Shown here: positions 28,278 through 50,388 of the stretch, one piece after another
How the letters are laid out: every line of letters starts with the position of its first letter
How positions within the stretch are numbered: position 1 is the stretch's first letter
Assembly: GCA_033442325.1 (NCBI GenBank)
Contig: JAWQFM010000007.1
Location: 830,719 to 894,718, forward strand
From: Salpingoeca rosetta
Lineage: Eukaryota; Protista; Choanoflagellata
DNA: 64,000 nt
Direction of reading: 5' to 3'
Made by a program: the position numbers and the translations under genes
Notes under the pieces: model-generated
Told to the model about the DNA's origin: nothing
Database searches by the model: none
The model's input: only the letters and a program-made list of their open reading frames with translations

Positions 28278-30733
<2,456 letters not shown>

Positions 30734-30786
30734 GAACGATCGGCGCGGTACAAGGGCGACTGCTGCAGCCACGTGCCGAGTCAGTG

Positions 30787-30857
<71 letters not shown>

Positions 30858-31220
30858 TGCAATGCTGCACTGTAAGGCCGCTACAGCGTGTTGTAGTGGT
30901 GCGCCTTGATGGATTGATGGATGGAGTTTGCCAGTCCAGCGGTTTTGCAGCTTGAGCGCAATCGATGCAAGCGGGAATGGTAGAATGGCGCGCGCGTGTG
31001 TGTGTGCGTGTGTGCGTGCGTGTGTTTGTGTCACATTTCACATTTCACACCACACAACACAGCAGCAGCAGCAGTGGCGTCCACGTTGCATGATTGGCTG
31101 TGTTGTTGTTGTTGTTTGTGCCATGCTGGCAGAGACGGCAAGGACTCGCAGTGCAGCGTTGGCACTTTTCTTCTGTTCTCTTGTTGCTTTGTTGCCAAAG
31201 GAAAAAAAAAGGTAAAGTAG

Positions 31221-31334
31221 TGCCGTCACCCAGGGTTTCTGTGCCTTCTGTGATGCGAAGGCCTGAACGACTGCTATCGAACTGGGGACCTTTAGATCTT
31301 CAGTCTAACGCGCTCCCAACTGCGCCATAACGGC
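31221..31334 (-). tRNA. tRNA-Phe(GAA) with a 41-nt T-loop intron (31235-31275; position 59/60)
   Basis: Exact reverse complement of 47162-47275, followed by an oligo-T terminator on the minus strand (A-run at about 31202-31210). Confidence 0.9.
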
Positions 31335-31691
31335 GAACTACGATTTGCTGAAGGCGGATGGTGGAATTTGCATATATCAAAAATTAGGCAACTTTTTTTT
31401 TGTGTGTTGAGAGAGTGCCCTCCACTCGCACTTTTCACTCCCCATTTCCCTCGCTAAGTCGCTTGCTCGTCGCCTGCTTTGCTGTTTGCAATGGGTCTTG
31501 TTGCTTCTGTTCCTCATACATCCAAAGGCCTATCGATTCTAATGAACTCAACTAACACAGCACTGTAACATAACAAAAGTGTCACTTAAACGCAAAGCAA
31601 GTGTCGCGCGTCCCTGCCCACAGGCACACAGACACACCCATCTACCCTTGGCTTTCCATCCTCCATTCCATCCGCGCGCTTGACAACAATG

Positions 31692-40479: not shown

Positions 40480-40897
40480 ATGGACGACGACGATGACATT
40501 GGATGGGAGGACCTGCACAAGCCGACATACTTTGTGTATGGCGGGTTGTTCGTGCTTTCGTACGAGACCCTGTTCTACCCTTTGGACTTTCTCAAGACGC
40601 GGCAGCAGTATGAACGCACGCCCACGACCATCGCCAGCATCGCCTCGGGGGTGTATCGACGCGAGGGCGTGCGCGGGCTCTTCCGCGGATTCGGCGCTAC
40701 CCTCGCTGGCAACTTTCCCGGGCAAGTAGTGTACTTTGGGGCATATGAGATGGCCAAGCACGCCTCGTTTACCTTGGCGCGGAAATGGAACGACAACTCC
40801 GACAGCAGCACCAGCACCAGCAGCACCAGCAGCACCAGCCCTGCTCGGCCCGCGACGACACCCACAGCGCCATCCGCCGACACAGCCAGCGCTATTC

Positions 40898-40931
<34 letters not shown>

Positions 40932-41945
40932 CGGTGGCAGCAGTGCTCGTGATGGTGGTGGCATCCCATCGGCGGCAGCATCGGCGGCAGCACAGGGCCA
41001 TGGGCCAAGACGGCCTGCAGCCGCATCCTTGCCTGCAAACCCTGATGGTGGACTTGCACTGCCTCAAATGTCGTCAGCAGACAGCACAGTGCACATTACC
41101 AGCACGCAACGGTTCATCGGGAACCTCTTTGCTGGGTTTGTTGCCGACCTTGTGTGCCTGCTCGTGTACACGCCTGCGGATATTGTTGCACAGCGTCACA
41201 TGGTGGCCACAGCAGCCGCCATCCTTCCCTCTCACTCAACAACATCACCATCACCAGCAGCGACAGCAGCAACACCACGAAGATCAGCAACAGCGTTGTC
41301 ACCAACAGCACCGACAACAACCCCGTTGCAACCCACATCGTCGACATCAGCAGCGGCTTCCACCCTAACGAGACCAGCACCAATCGCGCCGTCTTTGCAT
41401 GCACAACAACAACAGCAACAACAACAGCGCCATCAAAGGCAGCACCAGCAAGGGCAGCACCGTCTTTGCGGTTCAACAGTCTCGGCGAGAGGCGAGCGGG
41501 CGCACGTGCCTGATCTCCCAACCACGCGACAACTTGTGCGTTCTATCGTCAAGCAGGAAGGGTTTCGAGGTATGTTAACATGCACATGTGTGTGTACATG
41601 CATCCTTCCTTGTGTGCTGCACTCCTCTGCGACCGTATGCACCCTTGCGTGCTCATTTGAGCTTGTGACTCCTTGATACCAGGGTTCTATCGCGGGTACT
41701 GGGCGTCCGTTGCCACGTTCGCGCCATCCTCTGCCATCTGGTTTGCGGTGTATGAGCTGTGCAAGTTCAAGCTGGCGCACATGTGGCCGACAGCTGCGCC
41801 CAACGCGGCGACGCTGAACCACTTGGCCAGCGGGGCTGTCGCTGGGTTTGCTGCCACCGTCATCATGAACCCATTTGATGTTGCCAAGACGCGACTGCAA
41901 ACACTCGATGCAGGCATCAAGGAAGAGGCTGCCCTCATCAGGTAC

Positions 41946-46339: not shown

Positions 46340-47161
46340 CGTGTGCGTTTGTGTTTGTGTGTGTGTGAAGGTCAGTTCGGAATCGAGCGCTGCCTGTTGC
46401 TCGGCGAAAGTCTGAAGGTGGTGTGTACTGTGAAAGGTGGTGATGGTACAGCTTGTGCGAGCGCAAGTGCTGGTGGAGTTGGTTGAAACAGCAACGGACA
46501 ACAAGATGCCTGCGACTCTGAATGTGAATGAACACACACAGTTGTTCTTCCTTCCCCCATCACACAGCCACAGCCACAGCCACAGCCGTTGCTGTTGGCA
46601 TGAATTCGTCAGGGCCACGAGCAAACAAGAACACGACATAAACACGCACAGCACACCAGCACACACATCAGCACACACCTTGGTCGGGTGCACGATGGCG
46701 ATGATGAGCGAGATGGAATGAACAAATGAATGCAGCACCCCAAACACCAACGCGTCCATCAAACAAACAGCGAGCGAGCGAGCGAGCACGGCCACTGCAC
46801 CCACCACACACATGGACTTGAGAGAGGAGCTTCATGCCTTCGCGCCACTCGCTCTCGTCTGGCAACCCGAGCCCAGCACCGCTTGCCTTTGCACCGCAAC
46901 GCAACCCAACCCACACGCGTCCCTCACGCCAACCCGCCCTGACCAAATTCAAGGACAAAGCTTTGAACTGTTGGCGGCAGCTGTTGGAATCACCCAATCG
47001 TATACGGCGCCGCGAACAACAGCGAATGGTTTCGGAAACGGCGCGATGGGGAATTCCCTGACGAGGTTGCAAAACATTGCAAAAGATGGGAGCAATTTGC
47101 AAAGCAAGCAAGAGTTTTGTAAATGCAAATTCCACCTTCCGCCTTCAGCAAATCGTAGTTC

Positions 47162-47275
47162 GCCGTTATGGCGCAGTTGGGAGCGCGTTAGACTGAAGAT
47201 CTAAAGGTCCCCAGTTCGATAGCAGTCGTTCAGGCCTTCGCATCACAGAAGGCACAGAAACCCTGGGTGACGGCA
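47162..47275 (+). tRNA. tRNA-Phe(GAA) with a 41-nt T-loop intron (47221-47261; position 59/60)
   Basis: GCCGTTA-TG-GCGC-AGTTGGGA-GCGC-G-TTAGA-CTGAAGA-TCTAA-AGGTC-CCCAG-TTCGAT[41 nt]C-CTGGG-TGACGGC-A. All four stems pair (one G-U), giving a 73-nt cloverleaf once the insert is removed. A Pol III oligo-T run starts at about 47286. Confidence 0.92.
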
Positions 47276-47423
47276 CTACTTTACCTTTTTTTTTTTTCCT
47301 TTGGCAACAAAGCAACAAGAGAACAGAAGAAAAGTGCCAACGCTGCACTGCGAGTCCTTGCCGTCTCTGCCAGCATGGCACAAACAACAACAACAACACA
47401 GCCAATCATGCAACGTGGACGCC

Positions 47424-47461
<38 letters not shown>

Positions 47462-47664
47462 GTTGTGTGGTGTGAAATGTGAAATGTGACACAAACACAT
47501 GCACACGCACACGCACACGCACACGCACACACACGCGCACACGCACCCCGCTTGCATCGATTGCACTCAAGCCGCAAAACCGCTGGACTGGCAACCTCCA
47601 TCCATCAATCCATCAAGGCGCACCACTACAACACGCTGTAGCGGCCTTACAGTGCAGCATTGCA

Positions 47665-50388
<2,724 letters not shown>

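Follow-up and report, generated by a model that had tools for sequence, protein, structure and literature searches.

A candidate non-canonical T-loop intron in the tRNA-Phe genes of the choanoflagellate Salpingoeca rosetta

Textbook accounts restrict the nuclear tRNA introns of eukaryotes to position 37/38, and explain this by a TSEN ruler that works from the mature domain to the anticodon loop. The known exceptions are a red alga, some green algae and nucleomorphs. In C. merolae, 63% of tRNA genes are disrupted, often with several introns or with permutation, and introns outside 37/38—four of them in the T-loop—have been shown by RT-PCR to be excised (2013, PMC3728597). In the nucleomorph of Guillardia theta, inserts of 3-24 nt occur in the D and T arms of tRNA genes, tRNA-Phe(GAA) among them, and their excision was likewise confirmed by RT-PCR, although most cannot form a BHB (Kawach et al. 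2005, cited in PMC4090602; PMC3728597). Non-canonical introns at 59/60 are also documented in archaea (Marck and Grosjean 2003; listed in PMC4090602), where they are cut by EndA and where the relaxed motifs need the (alpha-beta)2 or epsilon2 enzyme types. Here we describe a tRNA-Phe(GAA) gene of Salpingoeca rosetta, a close single-celled relative of animals, whose T-loop is split after nt 59 by a 41-nt insert. All four Phe genes found in the genome carry the insert, and it probably represents a protein-spliced tRNA intron at a non-canonical position. Among holozoans, no such occurrence was found in the literature searched, nor did any paper there link choanoflagellates with U6 introns.

Anatomy and genomic distribution of the tRNA-Phe genes

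The gene lies in a 64,000-nt stretch of contig C7 (JAWQFM010000007.1, positions 830,719 to 894,718; hereafter the window), and its parts are listed in the table together with related features elsewhere in the genome. The first-pass annotation, which had proposed a complete cloverleaf interrupted between nt 59 and 60 in an apparent holozoan genome, is confirmed with respect to the sequence, and its placement among holozoans is correct. ARAGORN finds no tRNA in the unspliced gene, and Rfam RF00005 matches at only 31.4 bits, taking a false 3' acceptor strand from inside the insert. With the 41 nt deleted, however, ARAGORN returns a clean tRNA-Phe(GAA) with 7/4/5/5-bp stems, a 7-nt T-loop, G20, G37 and discriminator A73. 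The 41-mer occurs twice in the window against 0 expected, and the tRNA-plus-insert is therefore far beyond chance.

Features of the tRNA-Phe locus and of related loci (unprefixed positions are in the window; C numbers denote contigs of the assembly and L numbers loci)
Feature	Position	Strand	Description
5' exon of tRNA-Phe(GAA)	47162-47220	+	tRNA nt 1-59: acceptor 5' strand, D-arm, anticodon arm with GAA and G37, variable loop, T-stem 5' strand, T-loop nt 54-59 that hold the B-box core
Candidate intron	47221-47261	+	41-nt insert between tRNA nt 59 and 60
Intron hairpin	47234-47253	+	GCCTTC (47234-47239), 8-nt loop, GAAGGC (47248-47253)
Intron tail AGAA	47256-47259	+	proposed to pair with T-loop nt 54-57 (47215-47218) as the central helix
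Proposed 5' splice-site bulge or loop	47219-47221	+	AT|A
Proposed 3' splice-site bulge	47260-47262	+	3 nt, AC|C, next to the T-stem
3' exon	47262-47275	+	tRNA nt 60-73: T-stem 3' strand, acceptor 3' strand, discriminator A73
Pol III terminator	47286-47297	+	run of 12 T, 10 nt after the gene
Second gene copy	31221-31334	-	identical; intron 31235-31275; run of 9 T downstream
Inverted duplication	47115-50188 and 28292-31381		arms of roughly 3 kb, 91-99% identical; one Phe gene at the inner edge of each arm
Upstream flanks of the two C7 Phe copies	47099-47120 and 31360-31381		about 45-65 nt before the gene; contain ATGCAAAT, which matches the octamer motif
Microsatellites	47387-47470 and 31080-31110		(CAA)n followed by (CTG)n and (TG)n, about 110 nt downstream of each Phe gene; CTG run differs in length between the arms
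Open frame	40480-41676	+	between the arms; mitochondrial carrier domain (PF00153, E = 7e-22)
Phe genes, genome-wide	C7:877880, C7:861939, C9:847874, C9:842452	+, -, +, -	two inverted pairs on two contigs
tRNA-Ser(GCU), complete	C9:1700949-1701089, C34:503067-503210	-, -	hairpin CCCCAGC/GCTGGGG conserved across all copies (loci L010, L011, L020-L024)
tRNA-Ser(GCU), 5'-truncated	C9:1700769-1700880, C18:1347004-1347118, C18:1347186-1347297	-, +, +	start at about tRNA nt 26, without acceptor 5' strand and D-arm; keep anticodon arm, T-loop intron, 3' end and T-run; in tandem behind or beside each other
U6 snRNA match	C9:815095-815270; L019 1501-1680		65-nt insert in the pentaloop of the internal stem-loop
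Arrays following the Thr-CGU genes	C10:625943-627655 and C10:636200-636858; L046 1650-1960	+, -	at least 14 and at least 6 units, period about 125 nt

A BLAST search of the genome with the 114-nt gene recovers four places only. A search with the anticodon-arm pattern, allowing up to 2 mismatches, finds the same four plus one chance hit (C14:887142), and a search with the spliced-junction pattern, allowing up to 3 mismatches, gives a single chance hit (C5:221951); neither is a tRNA. No intronless copy was therefore recovered, although the assembly contains runs of N and unassembled Phe genes cannot be strictly excluded. A published tRNAscan-SE 2.0 analysis (Southworth et al. 2018, PMC6188563 Table S4b) lists the same four as the only Phe genes of S. 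rosetta, and flags all of them as putative pseudogenes. The two window copies are 15,828 bp apart, 5' end to 5' end, exactly the spacing of two Phe(GAA) calls on contig cont1.807 in that table, and a Thr-CGU pair spaced 11,145 bp apart matches cont1.921 in the same way; the table appears to rest on the same assembly and is thus not independent in that respect. tRNAscan-SE 2.0 searches for non-canonical introns only in archaeal mode (PMC8450103), which explains the pseudogene flags and directly bears out the first-pass suggestion that eukaryote-mode scans mis-score such genes. The same table gives Monosiga brevicollis four ordinary 73-nt Phe genes, so the insert was gained on the S. rosetta side. 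A metagenome search for relatives, using the T-loop, a gap of 25-55 nt and the 3' exon, gave 11 hits, all chance matches in what look like ordinary, mostly GC-rich contigs, and none a tRNA.

The C7 and C9 loci have unrelated flanks beyond a few bases on each side, sharing upstream only GTAG(T/C)TC directly before nt 1; the C9 copies lack the upstream flank of the C7 copies. Their exons are nevertheless 73/73 identical and their introns 40/41, the single change (T to A) lying in the loop of the intron hairpin. T-run terminators follow the two C7 copies and C9:847874. The fourth copy, C9:842452, lies beside a run of N and carries several changes in both exon and intron; it is either decayed or poorly sequenced. 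A 37-nt core of the intron, allowing up to 3 mismatches, occurs only in the Phe genes, and the insert is not a dispersed repeat or SINE. Nor is it a spliceosomal intron, since none of the junctions that leave a 7-nt T-loop has GT at the 5' end and AG at the 3' end of the insert, or a group I intron, since it is a 41-nt sequence with a single hairpin and no Rfam intron family matches. Among neighboring open frames, a Pfam scan found only the mitochondrial carrier; three other long frames nearby have no match.

Predicted splice motif and its recurrence in the genome

Five junctions would leave a 7-nt T-loop, but only 59/60 combines the T-stem (5/5) as outer helix with a 3-nt bulge at the 3' site and a 4-bp central helix between T-loop nt 54-57 and the intron tail (TTCG x AGAA, 3 of 4 pairs plus a G.A). 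No inner helix forms (1 bp). The motif is thus the relaxed hBH/BHL form that Soma et al. describe as typical of nuclear pre-tRNAs (PMC3728597), moved from the anticodon arm to the T-arm, rather than the strict archaeal hBHBh' form, which qualifies the archaeal-style label of the first-pass annotation. Sequence alone does not fix the junction, and for Phe alone the central helix is not significant (shuffle p = 0.08 Watson-Crick, 0.24 with G-U). Further, the bulge-helix conformer (-33.5 kcal/mol) is not the predicted optimum: folds in which the intron's own UUC pairs with the GAA tail are equally or more stable (-33.5 and -36.7 kcal/mol, the latter with the cloverleaf stems enforced). The 3' bulge survives in all of these folds.

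The same architecture, with different intron sequences, recurs elsewhere in the genome. All five tRNA-Ser(GCU) copies—two complete and three 5'-truncated, the latter possibly pseudogenes or 3'-part genes—carry a 53-56-nt insert at T-loop 59/60, no intronless copy exists, and removing the insert restores a class II tRNA-Ser. The Ser intron tail CGAA pairs 4/4 with UUCG (p = 0.005). RNAfold recovers this helix and the 3-nt bulge unaided in one of the two complete genes (C9:1700949), but predicts a different fold for the other (C34). Across copies the 5' part of the intron varies in three versions while the hairpin and tail stay fixed, which points to constraint on the 3' part. The only U6 match in the genome stops at model position 68 and carries an insert without GT...AG boundaries, flanked by the same register (4/4, p = 0.004), with an inner helix that forms with a 1-nt slip. 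A canonical Lys-UUU intron shows the same register at 37/38. Other disrupted genes may be hidden in published tables: M. brevicollis has Ser-GCT calls of 74 nt, too short for a class II tRNA, and five Lys-CTT "pseudogenes" of 91-166 nt, while for S. rosetta the paper itself states that Thr-AGT is lacking (PMC6188563 Tables S4a and S4b). A BLAST search with Thr-CGU found that each of the two Thr-CGU genes is followed by a tandem array whose units hold tRNA nt 31-73 plus the trailer and a CT-rich spacer; this resembles a satellite of tRNA 3' halves with a B box and no A box, and is unexplained.

The genome also encodes plausible machinery: two PF01974 catalytic paralogs whose exons carry what appear to be Sen34-like and Sen2-like motifs, a Sen54-like match, a weak Sen15-like match, and a multi-exon RtcB gene. 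Eukaryotic endonucleases are reported to cut BHB substrates by local structure (PMC4090602), and T-loop introns are spliced in C. merolae (PMC4090602, PMC3728597).

Interpretation and comparison with known systems

We consider it likely that these are the working cytosolic tRNA-Phe genes of S. rosetta, and that the insert is a protein-spliced intron at 59/60; excision, the fold, the cut sites and the enzymes involved are inferred, in the absence of RNA evidence. An essential tRNA must come from somewhere. In the proposed course, RNA polymerase III transcribes the unit from the internal A box and from a B-box core (T-loop nt 53-59) that the intron leaves intact, because it starts only after nt 59, with nt 53-58 contiguous; transcription stops at the T-run. 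In the Ser genes the first intron bases even complete a B-box consensus, and the U6 insert contains a B-box-like GGTTCGATGCC. In the precursor, the acceptor, D, anticodon and T stems would form as usual while T-loop nt 54-56(57) pair with the GAA tail, placing the last two intron bases plus nt 60 in a 3-nt bulge against the T-stem and leaving nt 58-59 plus the first intron base unpaired. The 5-bp T-stem with its 7-nt loop would thereby copy the geometry of an anticodon arm, with 59/60 corresponding to 37/38. Without a closed 5' bulge, however, it is unclear how the 5' site would be measured. The tRNA splicing endonuclease would cut both sites by local shape and RtcB would join the exons, giving the T-loop UUCGAUC; the T-loop/D-loop elbow, and probably the T-loop modifications, can form only after splicing.

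It is possible, though unlikely, that the insert is removed by another nuclease/ligase pair or an unknown guide, and that the apparent Phe motif is coincidence. The Phe motif alone is weak and lacks a defined 5' bulge, and most ectopic introns of the G. theta nucleomorph are excised without a BHB. However, the recurrence of the register with 4/4 pairs in two other gene families and in canonical introns of this genome, its restriction to 59/60, and the persistence of the 3' bulge argue against this, as does the presence of TSEN and RtcB, which are needed anyway for the many 37/38 introns. It is more doubtful still that all four loci are pseudogenes, with intronless genes lying in unassembled regions. 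Short inserts in the T-arms of eukaryotic tRNA genes are usually taken for pseudogenes (PMC4090602), the assembly has gaps, and one copy is degraded; but the published flag is an artefact of not modelling the insert, and three copies at two unrelated loci retain identical exons with the Phe identity bases, B-box core and terminators. This reading would require every functional Phe gene to be unassembled while four dead ones are assembled, and would need the same excuse for all Ser(GCU) genes and the only U6 gene found. Least likely is a mature tRNA-Phe that retains the insert as an extra arm: although nt 59 and 60 are probably the variable positions where the strand can leave the T-loop motif, making this the least damaging place for an insertion, and the insert folds into its own hairpin, no cytosolic elongator tRNA of this kind is known, the ends of the insert do not pair to form a cleanly emerging arm, the conserved tail is complementary to T-loop bases that must form the elbow—as makes sense for a transient precursor—and the same would have to hold for Ser(GCU) and the catalytic stem-loop of U6.

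A broader reading, which we regard as about as likely as not, is that S. rosetta runs a position-independent splicing system guided by local shape (hBH motif) and essential in vivo, which matures the only tRNA-Phe and tRNA-Ser(GCU) genes and also removes a tRNA-type intron from the single U6 snRNA gene. This would mean that the endonuclease of the closest relatives of animals still uses the archaeal-like, mature-domain-independent mode on natural substrates, one of which is not a tRNA. If the T-loop intron is real, it extends the exception to Holozoa, in a species with CRISPR genetics and a compact tRNA gene set, where all cytosolic tRNA-Phe—a single-isoacceptor and therefore essential tRNA—would depend on it. 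S. rosetta would then be a practical system for asking how a four-subunit, animal-like TSEN recognizes substrates without the mature-domain ruler. Because eukaryote-mode finders miss these genes or call them pseudogenes, published tRNA repertoires, codon-adaptation analyses and reports of "missing tRNAs" for protists can be wrong.

Compared with canonical 37/38 introns, the proposed motif shares a 3-nt bulge with the 3' splice site beside a 5-bp stem, a short helix between loop nt 1-4 and the intron tail, and a 5' site in an open loop; here, however, the motif sits on the T-arm, so the Sen54 ruler cannot apply as described. The inserts of the G. theta nucleomorph likewise interrupt eukaryotic tRNA genes in the T arm, but lie in a reduced endosymbiont nucleus rather than that of a free-living host. 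The archaeal 59/60 introns share the position and the logic of a transplantable bulge-helix motif that uses the local stem as its outer helix, although the motif proposed here is only hBH with a mismatched 4-bp helix, the enzyme would be heterotetramer-type TSEN, and no sequence relationship is implied. In C. merolae, as here, the genes are nuclear and of Pol III type, introns lie outside 37/38, including in the T-loop, with BHB-type junctions (hBHBh', hBH/BHL) that are only proposed here, the endonuclease is eukaryote-like, and standard eukaryotic gene finders miss the genes. In S. rosetta, where excision is inferred, only a few families are affected, each with a single intron, the host is a holozoan rather than an alga, and a Sen54-like gene and a weak Sen15-like hit exist, whereas Sen15 was not found in C. 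merolae.
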